The notes: generated by a model from the letters alone, not told the origin. 57,269 nucleotides of DNA from Chlorokybus atmophyticus (GCA_009103225.1 RHPI01000777.1:216969-274237), one strand, 5' to 3'. Positions 18,801-57,269 are shown, numbered from the stretch's first letter. Made by a program: numbers and translations.

Positions 18801-20176
18801 AACTTGGGTGGGCTAACATGAGAATGTATGCACGAGCATTGGCGGGCAAGTGGCGCATCAAGGGCAGAACAAGCAAGTGAGCGAGTGGGTGTGCAATTAT
18901 CAACAAGAACCCAAGAATTCTCCTCACCAGTAGACATAGTTAAAGGCCAGGGGCAAGGGACCAACCACCTCATTGACGCGAGCAGCGGCATTGGAGCTCG
19001 CCCGCAAGCGGTCCACTACTGTAAGTGCAACCACCAGCGCCATGACATAGCAGGCCATGTCCAGTACCAGTGACAGCACCACCACCTAAGCGCACGGGGA
19101 ACATTGTTGGCTGCATCTTAACGATTACTGTGTTGGGTTCAGTGTATACAGCACGTACACCCTGTTTGAATGTGTTTGCATATTGACGTGTGCGTGAATG
19201 CCCGTGTACATGTACATGTGCATGTGCATACACAAACAGACTGGCATGCATGCAGTTACCTGTTCAATTGTGCGGTCGCTTTTTGGCAACCGCAAAATGC
19301 GCTGGGCTGAGGCAATGAGCACAAGAAACAAAAACACCACGCTCAGCAATAGAATGACCTGCAGAAGCAGTGCATTGTAAGGATTATACCCACATGCGTA
19401 TGCATGCCTGTCCATGTGCATGTTGACTTGCCGCAGTGACCACGGCGGAATCTTGCTTGGCAGTGGAATCATGGGCCCCCACTCGCCACCCGCCATGGCT
19501 CATAATGACAGCGAAGATTTCGTAGCCCACCGCCAGCAGAGTGCACACGAACGCTACGAGGCGGATAGTGTTCACCTCAGCCTGTTGTTTTTAGGGTTGC
19601 TGTTGTGTGCTGCATGCCACGCGATACGACACACAAACGGATACTGTAGCCAGGCCAGAAGTATTGAAGACAAACACAGATGGCACGCCTGGCGTATTGA
19701 AAGACTGCATGCTTGTGTCAACCTACAGGTTCACAATGCGACTATGCACAACTGCTCCTTGGCCGCTTTTGCGTTTTGAAGGAGTGACGGACAGCGGCTA
19801 GCCACTTGTGCAGCAAGCAACTGTGTTTTACGTCAAACCATAACCCTAATTACAATGCTTTGGCTTACGTGTGACAGCACTTCTAGCAGCATCTTGGGCT
19901 TGGTAGGCGCAGACGTGCCGAGCGATTGCGGTGAGGCCACTGCGGCCTGCTCTCCTGCTGAGGTTTAACGGACAAGGTTTACACTACAAGCAGCCGGCAA
20001 ACCCAACCAGCTGACACATCCACGCAGCATGGACAATGCACTTGCTGACCCTGCTGATCGCCTTCCGCCTGGACGGCCTCCGCCTCCTCCTGCGCCTCAT
20101 GCCTGTCCTCCTTGTCAGAGTCGTCCTCCTCTTCCTGCTCCGAGTTAGCAATGGCACAGCCGATGCCACTGCTCAT
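15835..20176 (-). CDS. Multi-pass membrane protein with C-terminal class-3 (triacylglycerol/diacylglycerol) lipase domain; multi-exon
   Basis: Spliced motifs IEDKTTDTHVLVA|DRLVIAFRGTSS, KVHTGFC|GAWQSVAAQ, VLVCGHS|LGGALAMLCAYDL (intron 16751-16821 splits the Ser codon), VYTFGAPRVGN, FRLVHARDTV, FKHAGRVVLL, HLLVR|YRDAL. Hydrophobic exons lie at 18.0-19.6 kb. Start and stop are approximate. Confidence 0.85.
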
Positions 20177-20599
20177 GTGGGAATACGGCTGAGTTGGTTG
20201 ACTGGCTGAGAACTTTGGGGAAACTATGCTTCTCATGCAGGCGCACAACGCGCAAGTCGCCAACCACACCGCCTGATTGCTGACATGGCTAAAACCTGCA
20301 CGACTACTGGAGTGTATGACACGCTTGCTTACGGATGCCAACCGGCTGGTCTGATCGCGGTTGGCAACGTCACTCAAACAACAAACACCGCTGCACAATC
20401 ACACAGCGGCCTCAGACTTACACAAGCCATGCTGCCAATCAACTTCTCAACTTCTCTGCCTACAAACTCAGCGGCTTGCAGTGCTGTAAGGCCAATGCGT
20501 GCTGTACGACTAAGCACAAGTGGGTGACATACATTTCTAAATTGGCATTCCCACACACACTCCAACTTTCCGGAATTGGTTCTGGGCAAGCAAGTAACA

Positions 20600-20651
20600 A
20601 GAGTTTTAACACACACATACATTGAAAGATGTATGTGTGTGTTAAAACTCT
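20600..20651. other. Perfect 23-bp inverted repeat with 6-nt loop, followed by CTAG
   Basis: AGAGTTTTAACACACACATACAT-TGAAAG-ATGTATGTGTGTGTTAAAACTCT. Confidence 0.9.
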
Positions 20652-21604
20652 CTAGTTCCCTTGTTCAGCTACAAGCATGACATAAAACATGCCATGTGAC
20701 ATGCATTGAGATGCATTGATATGTCTATCATGTAGATATTATTACATACATGAAATAAGTTGTAATACTTTCGTATTGAGTTTAAGGATGTTAATGAACA
20801 AGTAGAATCCAAAACACATGATGTGATCGATCTCGCATGATGTTGTGACCAAGTGCAATAAATATATGTATGCTGTGTTTTGTTTTATAAACAAATACAT
20901 TATGTATTGTACAACATGATATGCAGCAACGAACGAACCACAATCTTGTACATATTATAACTTATATTCATTGCAATGCGTCATTTACCTTGACTTTTAT
21001 GAACATCAAGTTGTAGCTATTATGATACGTATGACAAGTGCAAAGTATTTTGCTTATAAGCCGCAATTGTTATCATATTATCATTATGCAATTGCATCCA
21101 TGCTTACGTAATTGCATCATTGAATGTTGATAACGTTACGGTAACATACTGATAGATGTATATCCTTTTTAACTTATAACTCATGTACATACTTATGTAA
21201 TGCACGTATGCTGTTATTACATTTTTGCAAGCTGAAGTTACTATGACATTGGCCTCTTGATTGCACTTATATTGTATTAATCGGAGTGCAGCTTAATAGC
21301 ATGTTGTTGTTACATCCAACATGCTGGACATGCTTATTCTTAAGCATCCATGTTGAAAACACGACTGCATGGGAGTTCAACTTTTTTGGTGTGTGCAATA
21401 CGTTAATTGTGCGCTCGCATAGGTTTACGTGCGCGCATCGTGGAAGTGCGTTGGAGGCACAGTCATTTTGGGCATGCAATATACGCAAGCTTTTGCAATA
21501 ATTATAATAAAAGAGTTTGATCTATATAATTATATATAACACCCACTGCTTTACTTTGCAAATACAGGTCTACAATAGGTTTATTAGTGTGATGAAACAT
21601 GATC

Positions 21605-21656
21605 GTGACCATGACCGTGACCGTGACCGTGACCGTGACCGTGACCGTGACCGTGC
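21605..21656. repeat. (GACCGT)n hexanucleotide microsatellite
   Basis: About 8 tandem GACCGT units in AT-rich intergenic DNA. Confidence 0.9.
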
Positions 21657-22351
21657 CATGCGATAGACATAATGAAATAAACTCATAAACCATATATTAT
21701 TTACTATATCACCATGAATGCATTGTTTACATCTTATCATTACATGCGTAATCGTCATCAACACACAATCTCGGAGGTCATAACAGTTATTAGCCGATAG
21801 TCCTCACTGGCAGCCCGACAAGCTAATGTTTCCATCAATGTTTCAGCGAAAGCACGCAATCGGAAACCCGAAGTGCATTTTATACATGCGAGCTACTTTT
21901 TTATATAGGTTCATGTCTTCTCGAAACTATTTGTAAATGTCCCAAGGTGGGTCACCCAACGCTCTATCTACTCAATATTGGGCCCCAAACATGAAATACA
22001 ATTTGTGTGTTATGCAAACCTGTAAACACATGCAGTCCATGCTGTGCCGACGCCCCACAAACGCCAAATGTTGACGATGTCCCTATGCATGTGCGCATGG
22101 GTTTTGCAAAACCCCAAAACGTAGTCAATCTGAACAAGTTCATTGACATTAGTTCAATGACACAACGCTACACGCTATTGTTCTGCCAATAGGCCCTATG
22201 CCGGTACATTGTCTTGTCAAAGATAACGTGCAAGGCACTCACGTGGCGGGTAGTGTAATGTCCGGCCGCGCATGCACTTGGCCCCGGCTTTGCCACTGCA
22301 TACAGTGCAAGCTTGCGGGTGGTGGCGGTGTTGTTGTTGTGTCCCAGCGGC

Positions 22352-24230
22352 ATGGCGGCTCGCAGAGCGGCGGCGCTGCTGCTGGTAGTCGCCTGCCGCT
22401 CTCTGCGGTGTGCAGGCCAAGGAGGATGGAGGCAAGGTGATGGGCTTCGCTCAGCCTCTTGACAGTGCTTAAACTAGAGTTGCTTCCGGCGCCTTTGCCA
22501 CATTTCTTCCAACGCACAGGCCCCCTAGCAACGACAAAGCTTTCCAACCACCGGTGCCGTCCAAGGCAAGCATTGGCTGCTCTCTTGCTAGTCCTCAACG
22601 CACAGTCCACTTTGGTTGGACGTCCATGGAGGTTTCAGATTTTGTGACCGTGTAGTGCATTGTGTGGTACTCAATGCAACACACACCGCTGACATGTGGA
22701 CTAAACGTCAGCTTGCACATGCTGTCATTGACACATGCTGCACAATTCGGCGCTGATCTCTTGCTGGCTGCAGGGGCTTGGCGTGGAGACTCAGTCCATT
22801 GGCGGAGTGGAGGTCGTCTTGGCTGAGCTTTGATGCCACCGTTAACGCTGGCCAGGCGGAGGCTCTGGTGGAGCAGCTGAAGGCGCTGAACGCTGTGTCG
22901 ATGTCCATTGCTGGCGACCATGTGAGCTTCCGACTGCCGCTCGACTTTGTGCAACAGCTCAGTATAGTGCCTGCACTGCGCTTCGTCACCAGGTCCGATC
23001 GCGCAACCATGGCCGGCAAAGCCCAGTCGCAGGGTGACAAAGCCATGGAAACCAACGCGCTCAAAGCCATGGTCCCCAGCCTGACCGGCGCTGGAGTCAA
23101 AGTTGGTGTGCTGTCTGACTCGTACGATGTGAGCTGCTATTGTTGCTGCTGTTGTTGTTGCTCGGGGCGTGGAGCACCAATAACACCGTTTGCGGCTGTA
23201 GGTACTAGAAGGAGCGGCCCAGGATGTTGGTAAGATGCAAAGTTTGTCTGGCACTAGTCTTTTTAATCCTTGTCAATTATACGTGCATGTGAGTGTCTCA
23301 GTTTCGTCGTCGTTTGAGTGTGCTCTTCAAGCAAAGCTAAGTGCACATTACCTGGCTCGCTAAGTCTTCTGTCATCATACGGCAAGTGGAGACCTCCCCG
23401 CTAATGTGGTTGTACGGGACGGTACCGCGGGAGCCGACGAGGGTAGAGCCATGTTACAGCTGCTAGGTTTCGCTTTTCTTCACCCGTGATGTCAGAGTGC
23501 ACATTGCAAGTGTAAACTTGCCAGGTGCATGACGTCGCCCCTAGCTCTCCGCTTTACTTCTAAACTCCATTCAACGGCCTAGCGGACTTTGCCAACGGTA
23601 TTAAGGCACTTGCTTAGAAAGGATGCAAAGTCGTAATTAACAACATTGTATACTTTACCGAGTCGTTCTGAGGACGGCACTGTTGGTACGTGCACATGCA
23701 TGGTATTACTGCAACATTGTGCGCTGCCGACACTGCTGCGTGTGGAAGGTGTCACTTGCGCCTTGTGCAGCTCAAGCGGTTGATCAAATGAAGGCAGCGG
23801 GTTCTGCATACTTCTCCCCTGCTCAGAACCAGGTGCACATTCCTACCGCAAGGTGTGCATGGGTGAGCCACTCACCCAATGGCTACATTGCTGACATTTG
23901 TTGTGTTCAGGCACGCCAAGCATGGGAGACAGGCAAGAGTTGCCTTCAAGAGTTGTGGTTGTTGCACATGTGCTTGTCGACTAACCTAACCTCACCGTTA
24001 CTTATCAATCCCATGTGCACAGTGACTTGGAGAGAAGATGCAGACGGTTTCTACTTGTTTGAACCAGGAAACGGGCTCCAGAAATTTGTTTTTACGGCAG
24101 GAAGCACAGCAATCATTGTGCTGCAAGTATGTCCCCCCCCNNNNNNNNNNNNNNNNNNNNNNNNNNNNNNNNNNNNNNNNNNNNNNNNNNNNNNNNNNNN
24201 NNNNNNNNNNNNNNNNNNNNNNNNNNNNNN

Positions 24231-24308
<78 letters not shown>

Positions 24309-27213
24309 GTGGGATCAACCCTTTGGAAACTGCGCTAGTGACATTGATCTGCTCTTTTATACATACGACCCTTTTAGAGTCCTGCAGTTTATTGGTGGCG
24401 ATGACTCAATCAACGTTGGTGGCGACCTGATTGCGGTACGCCAGCCGCTGTTGAGTGGGCTTGTTGAACAACTTTGTGATGCGCTGACTAAGTTTTCTGC
24501 AGAGATTCACACTGGACAACATTGGCAGCATTTATGATAATTATGCCTACCTCGCAATTAGGCACTTCAGTGGACCAGCACCACACCATGTTCAGTACGT
24601 TGACTTTGGGTCGTACGGACCATTGGAGTACATCACCAACTCTGCAGAATCCTTCGGTCATGCACAGGCCCGTGGTTGCTTCTCCACCGCCGCTGCATAG
24701 TAAGAAGTAGTGGGCATGGTCACGACCTGCTTGATATTGAACCAGTTGATTAGAGCAAAGATGATTCTCTGTTTGTAAACAGCTATAAGAAAACGCCACC
24801 ATTTGGGTTACTGCCACTGTTGTGGAGGACTTCAGCTCCGTTGGTGGTACGGCCATACTCTTTGATCCCCCGGGCACAAGGTCAGTCCGTGCAGCATAAC
24901 AGTACATTGCTCTTCCCGCGCATTATGATGCCTGAAATCTGACACGTCCCTCAGATGCAGGCTGGCAAAGCCTGTCATCCGTCTCAAGCCTGATGCAACC
25001 GCCCCTGATGAGTGTCTACTGGCGCAAACCGACTCTACACACATGAGCACATGCGTGTGCGTGCGAATGCGCATCGCACAAATACACGCATTTGTGTCAC
25101 ATACATGGCATTGCCTTTGCCTTTCTGCTGCACGTGCGCGCACGCAATTTCAAACCAACTCTACAAACACGAGCGTTCGGGCTTGCGCATGTGCCCACGT
25201 CTAGGGTCAGTTTCATGCATGCGCACATGCCACAGCCATCTTGCAGCATGCATACGTGCACAATCCGACCCTACAAGAGCACATGCACATTCGCACACGC
25301 CACTGTCACAGCAATGCCGCTTGCTGCATGAATGCGCACATGCACGCCAAAAACATCTTCCAATCGACTCCATGTAAGCATACGCACGCGCATGCGCATA
25401 CATCGCGCACACTCCACTGTCATGATGTTGCCTGCACACATGCGCGCGGGGCACACACATGCGCGCAGGCAGGCACACACGCACACATGTGTTCGCGCAC
25501 ATGCGCATGCACGCATACTGTCACAGTATTGCTGCGCTTGCTAATCTGCGGTTTGCTACAGATGGTACAGACACGACTTTCTTCGGTCAGGACAACGATG
25601 CAAACAACTTCCCCAACTTTTTCGGCACCTCAGCAGCAGGTGATATATGCGATGTGGTGTCGTATGGCAGTTGTGCTAGCTATCGACAGCTCTGAACCTG
25701 TACACACTTGCTGTGCAGCTCCACATGCGGCGCTTTGGCAGCGCTTCTGCGCCAGGCCAACCCGAGTTTGACTCCCGACCAAGTGTACAATATCCTGAGA
25801 CTTACTGCTGATGACATGAACAATCCATACACCTCTGGGTTTGACTTTGGCTTCGACTTTTCCACTGGGTGAGTAAGACATTTCATAGTCTTTGTGCCGC
25901 TATCTTGTCGAAAGTCTACACCTGTTGTCACTTACTTTGAGACTTGTGCAGGTACGGTTTTGTCAATGCCTTGACCGCATACACGGCCGCCAAATGCCGC
26001 ATTGCATGCGGGACGACCACCGTGACATGGCCATTCTATCTTGATCCCGGGTGCGGTCCGCAAGGGTTCCAGCTGACCTGCAACTCAGGGGTGCTGAGCT
26101 ACGCCACACCTTCCGGGACCTACCAGATTGCGCCACCCCTTCGCACAGACTACTTGCTGCTGCCGAGCGCAGTCACTACGCAGCTAACCGCGAACGGCTG
26201 CCCACCGGCAGCACCTTAAAGGGCTTCTCCACCATCGGCACGCCATTCAACATCAGCGGAAGCAATATGGTCATGGGCTATGGTAACAATGTGAAGGCAA
26301 GCTTCACCACCTACAGTGCGAACAATGCTCAGATCAGGACTGCCAGCTGCACGACCAGCAACACCAACGTGCCAACCTACTGCAACGGCACACGGTGCTG
26401 CTCGATGCCTCCAAGCCAGGCCGCCTTCCGCATCGCCTTCTCCAGCTCTGGTGGCTGCGGCGGTGCGGATATTTAGTGGCCTGCAGCAGTGAAGACCACA
26501 CCTGTCACCCCGGCCAGCGCCAAAGTCAACTATTTCCTGCGCTTGGACTTCACCGCACCACCTAGGTGCGTGCTGCTTTTATACACTGGCACTCTCGGAA
26601 AGACGTCTTTGCAGCCCAACCAGTGCTGTACCAGTAGCTTACACACAAATTCCATCAGGCCAAAAAGCACGCAAGGTTGTCCCGCAGCCATCTGGTCTGC
26701 ATCATCTTACACGTGCCGCTGGCCCTACAACCTGCCACGCACAACAACGCTCAGAGATGCTTTTGCGAGCACTGCAGCTAACAAGGCCATTGTGGACTCA
26801 CGCTTCCCCTCCTCGACCACGCTGCAGCAAGCATTGACTTCCACTGGACGAGCGTGGTAAGTGTCCTCATCAGTGCCAGTTGCGCTTCACTGCATCTGCA
26901 GAAACTCTCTTTGACTTGTCTGCCTGTGTGTGTACAGTATGCCACACTGGGGAGTCCAGGCAGTAGTGGCATTGCTCAACGCTTAGCAGATACGTTACCC
27001 GCTGTACATTAGCAAAGTCCAGACGCAGTTCCAGGCTGCATTGAAATCCATTGGAGACCGTAAGTGGTCGTTGCGCCTGGGTTACGCCTGCAACACTGCA
27101 TAGTCATCATCAGCTGACATGGTGTGCTTGGCTTGTGTTGTGCAGCTATCGCGCTCATCAGCATATTCATGAGGAACAATGTAAACAAGTGGCGCCCGCT
27201 CACCATATGCTAA
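22352..27213 (+). pseudogene. Secreted S8/S53-like serine peptidase fused to a WAK galacturonan-binding-like domain and a PDF1-like C-terminal domain; disabled
   Basis: Peptidase motifs SQGDKAM...GAGVKVGVLSDSY, DEGRAMLQL|VHDVAP, WDQPF, FGHA, NFFGTSAA|APHAAALAALLRQANP, TGYGFVNA. Then CRIACGTTTVTWPFYLDPGCGPQGFQLTCN, then QGCPAAIW...TTLRDAF...TLQQAL...AVVALLNA...YP...VQTQFQAAL...IFMRNN. Lesions: in-frame stops (about 23559, 23593, 26982), frameshifts and mutated splice sites. Confidence 0.8.
24141..24305. repeat. Assembly gap (90 N) followed by (TC)n microsatellite inside a peptidase intron
   Basis: N at 24141-24230, then about 37 TC units ending in the acceptor CTGCAG before WDQPF. Confidence 0.95.
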
Positions 27214-28588
27214 GGCGGTTATGCAATATGCCGACCAAAACTATGTTTCATCCATACTTCCTCTTGCAAAGCAAGCTATGCGGCAAAAGTAGGACACAGA
27301 TAGTAGATCAATAAGTTGTGGGATGTCGCTGAGCAACCAGTTTTGTTCAGTTGGACCACACGTTGAATACAGTGAAAGTGATCGGTTTGTCCCATGCGGA
27401 GTGTTCACCTGTCCAACATTGCTAAATAACCTCGACATGGTTGTCAATGAAACTTGTCACATAGCAAGACAACGGTTTGCTGTGGTCGTGCTTGCCAAGC
27501 ACTGTTTGTGGCAGTGACGGCATAGCAGGAACCTGTGAACACAGCTGCTCTTATATAGCATATACCTGTTGGATTGAGGAAAGTTGTGCATATTCTGTGC
27601 GTGCGCAGGGGTTTTGCACTGCCAAGGTCGCAGTTACACTACTTGCAGTTTACTTGATTTGTATTTGAGTGGTTGCATGGTGCAAGTAGTCCTGTAGATA
27701 CCCGCTCACCATAGGCAGGCCGTAGATTTGCAGGAGTTTTAAATGTTCACCAGGACCTCTGTCACCTTTTGGTAGGGACGCCTGCTGCCGCGCATCCTCT
27801 CTGCACTGTTCCATCGTCGCATTGGGATCTCTGCAAATGAAATTGAAAATCGCGGGAAGTTGTTGATGTATAGCGCTGCACTAGTACATGCACCAACAGT
27901 ACGCAAAGACCACATTTGTAGCAACGCATATCGCTCTTGCAGCAAACAACTCTCGAAGTACCTCATACGGAAACAAGCAGCAAAGGTTTTGGCAGGCGCG
28001 CAAGCCATATTGCACGTATACTTGTACCCATCAACACGACTACCTCTCAACAAACTGCTCAAGACCATACACAGCCCACAACGGCAACAAGGCAAGTTGC
28101 TATTTTATCAAGTGCCCAGTGTTAGAAGAAAGAACACGATGGTAAGTGCACAGGTTGTACGCAGCTGTGAGCTTTACGTGACTGCTCGTTGGCTTTACAT
28201 TATAAAGCCAACGAGTAGTCAGGTAAGCACACACGAGCAGCTTCACGGGTGTGTTTGTGTGTAAGCAAAGACGCCAGCTGTGCCTGCGTGCGAGTTTGCG
28301 ACCGTTACCCGAGCGCAGGGCCACGGTTGATTTGCTTCTTCTCCTCTTGCATGCCCGCAAATCCCGCCGCCGCCGCCACCTTACAGACAGTTCATGTGAG
28401 GGAAGCTGCTCTCAACATACGTGAGGGAAGCTACTCTCAACATGCAAGTCACTGCAGGCTTGCGCACTGCGGCGCTTTGCTCAATGGCACGGCCGGGCAT
28501 CCGCCTTGCATTTGATGTTCAACGCATTGCCAAGGTTGGCTCGAAGTAGGTAAATCGGGACACAAAAGGGGGAAACTCGGGTCGGAAC

Positions 28589-28822
28589 TGTCGGGTCGGG
28601 GGAAGTCGAGGGTCACATTATCTCGGGCCGCTGCAGGGAAAGTCATGCTTGCTAGCCCTGCTGCTGCAACATGTTATAACATGTGGCAAAAGTAAAAGAT
28701 AACCCAGCTTGTATGGCGAGGAGTGCTTGGTGGAGCTGCTCTACTGTTGCTGAGTCACACGGACATGTGGAGGCGGTGTCCTCCTTAGTGTACATGCTGT
28801 GCTGTAGGATACACAGTCAACA
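28589..28822. repeat. Terminal repeat B, copy 1 (TGTCGG...TCAACA)
   Basis: About 90% identical to 29061-29291; contains the palindrome ACATGTTATAACATGT. Confidence 0.85.
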
Positions 28823-55371: not shown

Positions 55372-57269
55372 ATGGCGTCTCGCGGGACGGCGGCGCCGCT
55401 TCTGGTGCTGGCGGTTGCCTGCCTCTGTCTCTGTGGAGCGCATGCCAGCACGAATGGCGGCAATGTGGCGGGCTTTCCCCAGTCGCTGGGTAGCGCAGCT
55501 GGGCAGCCCAGCACTGCTTCCGGCGCCTTGGCCCCACCTCTTAAGACGTACAAGCCACCTAGCAGCGACAAAGCTGTCCGCCAACTGGTGCCGTCCAAGG
55601 CAAGTGTTCGCTGTCCTTTTCTTGTTGTATGCTTACTGGTCAAGATGTGACCTGCCACCTGCTGACTGCTTTGTACGTCCTTTTTGTAGTGCAGTGGTGT
55701 GGTGTACACAGTGGAACTCAGTGCAACACAGACCGCTGTCGCGTGAACTCAACGGCAGCTTGCATGCACACCCTGCAAAATCTGACAATGACTGCTGCTT
55801 GCTGCAGGGGCTCGGCGTAGCGACTCAGTCCATTGATGGAGTGGAGTATGTCTTGATTGATGCCACCGCCAAGCCTGGCCAGGCGGAGGCTCTGGTGGAG
55901 CAGCTGAAGGCGCTGAACGCCGTGTCGGTGTCCGTTGCGGGCGACTATGTGAGCTTCCGGCTGCCGCTCAGCTTTGTGCAACAGCTCAGATTGCTGCCTG
56001 CACTGCGCTTCGCCACCAGGTCCGAGCGCGCAGCGATGGCCGCCCAAAGTCCAGTCGCAGGGTGACAAAGCCATGCGAGCCGATGCACTCAAAGCCATGG
56101 TCCCCGGCCTGACCGGCGCCGGAGTCAAAGTTGGTGTGCTGTCCGACTCGTACAATGTGAGTTGCCCAGCTCCCAAGTGTATTGTTGTTGCTGCTGTTGT
56201 TGTTGTTCAGTGAGTAGAGCACCAATTCACACTGTTTGCGGCTGCAGGCACTGGGAGGAGCAGCAAAGGATGTGGGTAAGTTGCAAAGTTTGTCTGGCAG
56301 TAGTAGTCTTTCCAGTCCTGGTTCCAGTCATGCATATGTATGCATACATGTGGTCGCCTTGATTTCTTCATCTTCTGGCTGTGCTCTGCTTCAAGCAGAG
56401 AACAGCGAGAAGATGAAGCTAGTAGCACATTACCTGGCTTGCTAAGTCTCTCCTGTCGTTGTACAGCAAGTGGAGACCTGCCCGCTGGTGTAGTTGTCCT
56501 GAAAGACATAACCAAAGGAACCGATGAGGGTAGAGCTATGTTACAGCTGGTAAGTTCGGTGATGCTGCACCTGTGGTGTCAGAGTGCACATAACAGGTGT
56601 AATCTGTTGCCTGGCAGGTGCATGACGTTGCCCCTGGCTCTCCGCTTTACTTCTACACTGCACACAACGGCCTAGCTGACTTTGCCAACGGTATCAAGGC
56701 GCTTGCTCAGAACGGGTGCAAAGTAATTGTTGACGATGTCTCTTACTTTGCTGAGCCATATTTCGAGGACGGCATTCTTGGTACGCAAATGCATGGTATT
56801 ACTATGACGTTGTAGAGTAGGCAATGCGGTGTTGTGTGCTGCCGGCACTGCTGCATGCGTGCAGTGACACATGCGCCTTGTGCAGCTCAAGCGGTTGATC
56901 AAGTAAAGGCAGCGGGTTCTGCATACTTCTCCTCTGCCCAAAACCAGGTAAGCTGCGGTTCCTTGCTGGAAGGTATGCATAAATCAGTCACTCACGAAGT
57001 GGCCACAATGCTGACGTTGGTTGTGTTCAGGCACGCGAAGCATGGGAGACAGGCAAGTGTTATTTTCACATGTTGGGGTTGTCGCACATGTGCTTGGAGA
57101 CTGCCCTCACGGTCATTTCGTTTACCCCTTGTGCGCAGTGAGCTGGAGAGAAGACTCGCACGGATACTACTTGTTTGCACCAGGATACAATCTCCAACCG
57201 TTTGCTGTTGCCGCCGGAACGTCAGCAACCATTGTGCTACAAGTATGTCTGCACACGCGCATGTGCATC
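55372..57269 (+). CDS. Second S8/S53-like serine peptidase gene, 5' part (runs off the window); one apparent +1 frameshift near 56045
   Basis: Signal peptide MASRGTAAPLLVLAVACLCLCGAHA; VKVGVLSDSYN; ASGDLPAGVVVLKD...DEGRAMLQL|VHDVAPGSPLYFYTA.NGLADFANGIKALAQNGCKVIVDDVSYFAEPYFEDG; AVDQVKAAGSAYFSSAQNQ. Same exon structure as 22352-24130. Confidence 0.8.

Follow-up and report, generated by a model that had tools for sequence, protein, structure and literature searches.

In land plants the extracellular part of WAK and WAKL proteins carries an N-terminal GUB_WAK_bind domain (PF13947) that is followed by a further Cys-rich stretch, and the plant subtilases (SBT, for example cucumisin), secreted subtilisin-fold enzymes of the plant lineage, combine a PA domain and an Fn-III-like tail with the classical Asp/His/Ser triad. 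Here we examine a locus of Chlorokybus atmophyticus in which a GUB_WAK_bind domain is encoded behind a peptidase. The locus occupies positions 22352–27213 on the + strand of a stretch of 57,269 nucleotides (GCA_009103225.1 RHPI01000777.1:216969-274237), referred to below as the window. Its exons specify a signal peptide and pro-region and then a divergent S8-like peptidase of bacterial type; behind this come a GUB_WAK_bind domain, a stretch rich in Cys and, last, a helical tail of the family PF27764 (PDF1_C). Judged from its sequence it is, with a probability of about 0.9, an unprocessed (intron-keeping) pseudogene, a decayed duplicate in a family found here only in Chlorokybus. In contrast with the WAK and WAKL ectodomains, the GUB domain of the Chlorokybus protein lies C-terminal to an enzyme, and Pfam matches neither EGF repeats nor a membrane span nor a kinase in the two larger Chlorokybus relatives introduced next, which sets them apart from WAKs.

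When 1.84 billion representative proteins were searched exhaustively with HMMER for relatives of the stop-free tail piece 26477–26857 (127 amino acids), six reached an E-value of 1e-3 or better, the sole eukaryotic matches being three gene models of Chlorokybus atmophyticus itself. ChrspC232943S00916 (P0001; 437 amino acids, N-terminally truncated) is 88% identical to the tail piece and Chrsp46S06086 (P0002; 969 amino acids, full length) is 55% identical, the E-values for the Chlorokybus paralogs being 9e-38 and 1e-18; the third, P0003, is an 89-amino-acid fragment. In P0001 and P0002 the parts follow one another as in the locus (pro-region, S8-like peptidase, GUB_WAK_bind, the Cys-rich stretch, PDF1_C) and the C-terminal stop is the same, but their reading frames are open whereas no domain of the locus has escaped breakage. 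Over the GUB_WAK stretch P0001 and the locus are about 93% identical, and P0001 carries precomputed annotations for PF13947, PF27764 and PF00082, while identity to P0002 over the peptidase and Cys-rich pieces is 37–54%. The public models have peculiarities of their own. The annotated start Met of P0001 (residues 1–25) falls in the equivalent of intron 12 sequence of the locus (80% identical), and the model is therefore mis-annotated at its N-terminus. P0002 contains an insertion of 25 residues that is absent from the bacterial homolog described below and near which the neighbouring copy in the window has an exon boundary; it may represent an intron that the model has retained.

The window is eukaryotic DNA of about 53% G+C with GT..AG introns, and 18 exons of the locus were mapped on the + strand from the ATG at 22352 to the TAA at 27211–27213. 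The map is based on direct reading and three-frame translation, on alignment to the intact paralogs P0001 and P0002, on nucleotide alignment to a second copy of the gene at 55372–57269, and on spliced RNA contigs of relatives placed on 24310–27300; these contigs are 80–95% identical to the window and come from two runs of one 2021 study. GT..AG joints in the contigs fix six introns (24434/24502, 24699/24783, 24878/24959, 25867/25951, 26563/26657 and 27059/27146). All sequence searches with DNA of the window used single stop-free exon pieces.

Along this map the damage begins at once. Exon 1 (22352–22565), which holds the start codon and an N-terminus that by eye resembles a signal peptide, has a net loss of 14 nucleotides relative to the neighbouring copy; its frame changes near 22400, a TGA stands at 22460 in the frame of the ATG and a TAA at 22470 in the downstream frame, and reading from the ATG at 22352 ends after 36 codons. 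Exon 2 (22774–23128), encoding the pro-region and the Asp motif (..VGVLSDSY..), has a 7-nucleotide insertion at about 22822–22828, a frameshift that leads to a TGA at 22831. Exon 3 (23202–23229; 28 nucleotides) matches the residues of P0002 after SYNV. Exon 4 (23383–23462), with the ..DEGRAM.. motif in which Glu takes the place of the S8 His, is altered at both splice sites, the acceptor AG having become GG (A to G at 23381; CAG in the neighbour) and the donor GT having become CT (23463–23464; GTAAG in the neighbour). Exon 5 (23525–23685) contains a TAA at 23561 and a TAG at 23615, where the neighbour reads TAC and CAG, and a net loss of two nucleotides within 23640–23670 that leads to a TGA at 23669. 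There follow exon 6 (23771–23832; ..AYFSPAQNQ, the oxyanion-Asn region), the mini-exon 7 (23911–23932), which has a GC donor in both copies, exon 8 (24023–24126), which ends ..IIVLQ and has the donor GTATGT, exon 9 (24310–24435), which starts WDQPF and has the RNA joint 24434/24502, and exon 10 (24503–24699; RNA joint 24699/24783).

In the second half of the gene, single nucleotides are missing after 24809 in exon 11 (24783–24880), after 25728 in exon 14 (25719–25868) and after 26200 in exon 15 (25952–26565), and the RNA contigs of the relatives carry one more nucleotide at each of these places. At the end of exon 12 (24961–25007) the donor position at 25008 reads AT instead of GT (ATGAGT), a probable splice-site lesion; an RNA contig has a loose end at 25010. 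Exon 13 (25562–25639) ends ..NFFGTSAA, the start of the catalytic Ser motif, and exon 14 supplies the remainder together with the C-terminal part of the S8 domain. Exon 15 completes the peptidase and encodes the GUB_WAK_bind domain (about 25995–26130) with its Cys-rich WAK-like continuation, and is interrupted by a TAG at 26474–26476 where P0001 has Leu. Exon 16 (26659–26856), which encodes the initial half of the PDF1_C-type tail (GC..IW..WP..TLQQAL), lacks one nucleotide after 26848; with an extra nucleotide near 26949 the frame is regained after seven wrong codons. Exon 17 (26938–27059), the tail core (..ALLNA..), contains a TAG at 26984–26986 in place of Tyr in P0001, and in exon 18 (27146–27213; RNA joint 27059/27146), which ends with the native stop TAA at 27211–27213, the conserved last-but-one Cys near the C-terminus (KWCP) has become Arg.

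Altogether five stops arose by base substitution (22470, 23561, 23615, 26474 and 26984), and these are accompanied by at least seven insertions or deletions and three splice-site changes, in agreement with the preliminary description of this DNA, which had called the copy dead. With stops, frameshifts or splice-site changes in every domain, the copy would yield no protein. Identity to the neighbouring copy is 83.6% in exons and 81.3% in introns; exons and introns have thus diverged to much the same extent, which gives no indication of purifying selection, and the extent of the divergence, as far as sequence can tell, points to an old duplication. The locus therefore has the features of an unprocessed pseudogene: seventeen introns are kept, the lesions are multiple and independent, and the exons are not conserved in excess.

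Several points weigh against this reading, or against the picture of the family that goes with it. At the level of the protein, the assignment of Asp, Glu and Ser as the catalytic residues of the peptidase is drawn from motif order and the bacterial alignment; P0002, which has Ala at the place of the Glu, may be inactive, as could then hold for some intact members of the family; and the link of the tail to land-plant PDF1 is suggested by the Pfam name of PF27764 and the pattern of the PDF1 C-terminus rather than by direct comparison. At the level of the DNA, the single-nucleotide insertions and deletions could in principle be assembly errors, and the dead copy may itself still be transcribed, run X1 containing two contigs that are at least 99% identical to sequence somewhere in 24310–27300.

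It could be argued from the first of these DNA-level points that the gene is functional and that faults in the sequencing or assembly of a gapped draft account for its breaks. Such an explanation could appeal to the run of N beside a (CT)n tract in intron 8, to the fact that several lesions are single-nucleotide insertions or deletions, and to the sole lesion of the neighbouring copy, which falls in a short C run. It should be emphasized, however, that five of the stops and the three splice-site changes are substitutions, not all of which can be errors of assembly, that seven nucleotides have been inserted in exon 2, that a conserved Cys has been lost, and that exon divergence equals intron divergence; a functional gene is accordingly highly improbable. 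The second point raises the question of whether the dead copy is still transcribed and acts as a non-coding or regulatory RNA. The two near-identical contigs of run X1 are what speaks for this, but just 5% of the sampled words occur in any run, the contigs that could be placed are all 80–95% identical and hence derive from paralogs or orthologs, and introns 3, 4 and 12 have mutated splice sites. We consider a role as RNA unlikely, and retain the interpretation of the locus as a decayed, unprocessed duplicate.

Although the copy is broken, the architecture of the gene from which it decayed can be read. The peptides quoted in the preliminary description were found where it had placed them, by reading and three-frame translation, and the peptidase exon is in frame with the WAK-like tail as it had stated. 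Exon 14 ends ..FSTG, and exon 15 starts YGFVNALTAY and leads, without a change of frame, into the GUB_WAK-like part that is rich in Cys; as a single exon encodes both this part and the end of the peptidase in one frame, they are joined without splicing. The tail motifs TTLRDAF, TLQQAL, AVVALLNA, YP..V..F.AAL and IFMRNN are located in exons 16–18. The stop, which had been thought to follow RNN directly, has to be moved, as the frame reads ten more codons to the TAA at 27211–27213 and gives a C-terminus as in P0001. In run X1 a 2563-nucleotide contig from a relative covers 25729–25867, 25951–26566 and 26672–26835 with GT..AG joints, and so unites, in one spliced RNA, the peptidase with the WAK-like part and, up to 26835, with the first half of the tail, which indicates that the fusion is one gene. 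That the peptidase exons and the Cys-rich and tail exons are instead separate neighbouring genes, with the chimera an artefact of reading, is an idea raised solely by the unrelated origins of the domains; no support for it was found, and with the C-terminus of the peptidase and GUB_WAK sharing exon and frame, P0002 (969 amino acids) and P0001 each holding the domains in one model, and the spliced RNA of the relative running from the peptidase through the WAK-like part to the middle of the tail, it can be given almost no credence. The proposal that an S8-like peptidase, a GUB_WAK-like domain and a PDF1-type tail belong to a single gene is thus borne out, as is the absence of a kinase: the protein ends where P0001 ends, at 27213, and the next 1.5 kb (27214–28700) contain no kinase motifs.

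The nearest relatives of the peptidase outside Chlorokybus are bacterial. When prokaryotes were scanned with one genome for each species, an open reading frame (ORF) of Methylotuvimicrobium buryatense 5G (L001 2782–5466; 894 amino acids) proved 37% identical across the pro-region and the catalytic domain (E 3e-52), and a second match came from a metagenome-assembled genome of Bacteroidetes. Both the M. buryatense ORF and the Chlorokybus peptidase carry LSDSY, DEGRAMMQLVYD, SSAGN, LQWD and GTSAAAP, and in both Pfam detects solely the C-terminal half of S8. Unlike the Chlorokybus gene, the bacterial ORF ends in a dockerin-type module, lacks GUB_WAK and PDF1_C, and has no introns. Only the Ser-motif region of plant subtilases aligns with the Chlorokybus peptidase (E 0.002). 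The earlier proposal of a bacterial-type enzyme is therefore upheld.

The S8 affiliation comes from the Ser-motif half, the one part of the peptidase that sequence searches of Pfam and the PDB recognise. The Pfam model Peptidase_S8 (PF00082) matches P0001 (1.2e-10) and P0002 (9.6e-8) above its cut-off and the exon 14 piece of the window below it (E 0.0078); the intact P0001 and P0002 contain the catalytic Ser motif GTS.A.P within this match, and in the locus the motif is split across exons 13 and 14 (GTSAA|APHA) and broken by the −1 frameshift. The two copies in the window, P0002 and the bacterial ORF all keep LSDSY, which lies in a half of the domain that the Pfam alignment excludes. At the place that corresponds by motif order to the HGT motif of the S8 His, DEGRAM, with Glu, stands in the dead copy, in the neighbour and in the bacterial homolog, and DAGRAM, with Ala, in P0002. 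From these alignments the peptidase is judged to be of bacterial type, with Glu in place of the classical S8 His. The Glu of the DEGRAM motif is not followed by an Asp four residues on, as the E...D spacing of sedolisins (S53) would have it, and Pro-kuma_activ is absent from the Pfam matches of P0001, P0002 and L001. Of the earlier label ‘S8/S53-like', the first half thus stands, on GTSAAAP and the Pfam matches of P0001 and P0002, and the second does not.

Taken together with the C-terminal modules, these features suggest that the intact members of the family would be single secreted proteins consisting of a signal peptide, a pro-region and a bacterial-type peptidase of subtilisin fold with putative catalytic motifs for Asp (LSDSY), Glu (DEGRAM) and Ser (GTSAAAP), followed by GUB_WAK_bind, a further Cys-rich stretch and a helical, disulfide-closed PDF1_C at the C-terminus, with no membrane span or kinase. 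In such a protein the two non-catalytic C-terminal modules might hold or aim the secreted peptidase in the extracellular matrix.

The GUB_WAK signature reported previously is confirmed by Pfam. The window piece 25941–26216 matches GUB_WAK_bind at E 4.1e-8 with 33.9 bits, against a curated cut-off of 29.4, and P0001 also scores above it (31.1 bits); P0002 scores 24.8 bits and lies below. The following stretch (PF.IS..N, C.., YCNG..CC) appears similar to the part of WAK proteins after the GUB domain. A match to a short domain, with one paralog under the cut-off, could reflect a chance or convergent Cys-rich pattern unrelated to the ectodomains of land-plant WAKs, and structure offers this explanation some room: the model of the GUB_WAK and Cys-rich region, built from four alignment rows, reached a predicted local distance difference test score (pLDDT) of 31.8, too low for a fold comparison, and a PDB sequence search with the region returned no relative. 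Two copies nevertheless exceed the curated cut-off, the motif C..CG..WPF..GCG..F.L.C is kept between paralogs that are only 50% identical, and the following stretch appears to resemble WAKs as well, so that we regard a chance match as improbable and homology to the WAK-type domain as the better explanation.

What such a domain would bind in Chlorokybus is a separate matter, and here the preliminary description, which had proposed a pectin-targeted protease, is not sustained. Endo-polygalacturonase releases nothing from the ‘pectin' of Chlorokybus, which lacks alpha-1,4-galacturonan (PMC10953000). The role of WAKs as receptors for pectin fragments has been refuted genetically, Arabidopsis WAKs being dispensable for oligogalacturonide signalling, and the same study still states that WAKs bind pectin (PMC11684076). 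As Chlorokybus is without the homogalacturonan of land plants, pectin targeting is unsupported, and homogalacturonan is an unlikely ligand there.

The C-terminal tail was described earlier as PDF1-like and counted as one of two plant wall modules. At the level of the Pfam family the first of these statements holds: P0001 carries a precomputed PF27764.1 annotation, and a hidden Markov model (HMM) built from tails outside Chlorokybus matches the tails of P0001 (41.3 bits) and P0002 (29.2 bits), with the exon 16 and exon 17 pieces of the window colinear. As a plant-specific domain, however, the tail does not qualify. A word-index search with a mixed alignment found it as the C-terminal domain of at least 854 proteins (about 100–330 amino acids), and those few that carry a source name are bacterial; plant PDF1 was not reached by word-index searches with the P0002 tail or with an alignment of Chlorokybus sequences only. 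The AlphaFold model of the tail (110 sequences) is all-helical with a pLDDT of 94.3, and its nearest ESM-Atlas clusters (template modelling (TM) score 0.77–0.80) are all bacterial (Acidobacteriota, Actinomycetota and Gemmatimonadota), one of them being annotated ‘PF27764 PDF1_C'. Searches of the PDB by sequence, by Foldseek and by VIA-align wide (best Z 4.7) turned up only generic helical bundles and no solved structure like the tail, and ESM Atlas feature searches gave no usable match. The domain mostly ends the ORF in the 56 PDF1_C ORFs on metagenome contigs, and 7 of the ten longest have a Pfam match, in each case to immunoglobulin-like (Ig-like) or beta-sandwich surface domains (SdrD_B, CarboxypepD_reg, SpaA, DUF11, FlgD_ig and others). 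The view of the tail as a second plant wall module therefore finds no support, as the domain on metagenome contigs mostly ends surface proteins and its named matches and nearest folds are bacterial.

The Chlorokybus and bacterial versions of PDF1_C have in common a length of about 110–120 residues, a start of the form GC..W..WP, an ..AALLNA.. core, a ..CP.. end and a position that is mostly last in the protein. They differ in an insertion of about 11 residues in Chlorokybus and in their partners, which in bacteria are Ig-like repeats and not peptidases. The Chlorokybus tails also align over their full length with six tandem repeats of P0004, a metagenomic protein. P0004 (808 amino acids, from a metagenome of the Joint Genome Institute (JGI)) consists of PDF1_C-type repeats, each about 113 residues long with Cys at its boundaries, an unusual multi-copy arrangement given that PDF1_C is elsewhere mostly terminal. 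A bacterial fusion of S8 and PDF1_C was considered as the source of the whole gene and rejected: none of the 56 metagenomic PDF1_C ORFs (0/56) has this peptidase or the GUB region, and the sole hint of such a fusion is a weak ESM-Atlas row for an S8 cluster (TM 0.57).

The second copy in the window, at 55372–57242 on the + strand, was identified by nucleotide alignment and translation; its exons 1–8 are visible and the rest is cut off by the end of the window. The dead copy and this neighbour, which share a strand and are separated by 33 kb, make up a tandem pair. A short C run at about 56041–56046 contains one nucleotide too many, which shifts the frame of exon 2 and leads to a TGA at 56063; it may be either genuine damage or a fault of the assembly. 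The eight visible exons are otherwise intact and far better preserved than those of the dead copy, in line with the earlier suggestion that the paralog at 55.4 kb is nearer to functional. In both copies introns 1 and 7 begin with GC (GCAAG; at 22566 and 23933 in the dead copy and at 55600 and 57053 in the neighbour), and by their sequence these look like genuine GC-AG introns retained since the duplication.

The assembly gap (a run of N at 24141–24230) lies within intron 8 (24127–24309). A (CT)n tract at 24231–24303 directly follows the N run, and the acceptor AG of the intron is at 24308–24309. The residues that flank the gap are contiguous in P0002 (..EIILQWDQPW..) and in the bacterial homolog (..IVLQWDDP..), so that the gap is intronic and costs no codons; on this alignment the length of intron 8 is the sole thing that it hides. 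The microsatellite of about 73 nucleotides is probably the cause of the adjoining gap. Intron 12 (25008–25561; about 550 nucleotides) is of low complexity and rich in CA and GC. Just upstream of the gene, at 20001–22000, G+C falls to 0.42 from the value of about 0.53 seen elsewhere in the window.

The literature yielded no description of a subtilase–GUB_WAK–PDF1_C architecture, and the genome paper makes no mention of WAK, subtilase or protodermal factor. The statement that no such protein had been described is correct as regards published papers; it does not extend to databases, as gene models with all three Pfam domains are present in the public Chlorokybus proteome. The locus itself has no protein function, and its value is that of one more, decayed member of a family found here in Chlorokybus alone. 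What it adds is the pseudogene and the tandem pair, the recognition that PDF1_C is mainly a domain of bacterial surface proteins, and the weakness of the inference that pectin is the target. In this family two surface modules of land plants, the WAK-type GUB domain and the C-terminal domain of PDF1, are placed on a bacterial-type enzyme, and not on a receptor kinase, in the earliest-branching streptophyte lineage. Tentatively, and with more doubt than confidence, the intact relatives may be pictured as matrix-anchored proteases in which a kinase-free WAK-type module, present near the base of the streptophytes, would bind a sulphated, glucuronate-rich ‘pseudo-pectin' of Chlorokybus in preference to homogalacturonan; the PDF1_C module of land plants would in that case derive from a domain of bacterial surface proteins that early streptophytes had taken up. 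The family bears on the origin of the WAK ectodomains and of PDF1, and on the ligand of GUB_WAK before the pectin of land plants existed. If the tentative picture is true, the tandem pair with one decayed member would represent birth-and-death evolution within this family.

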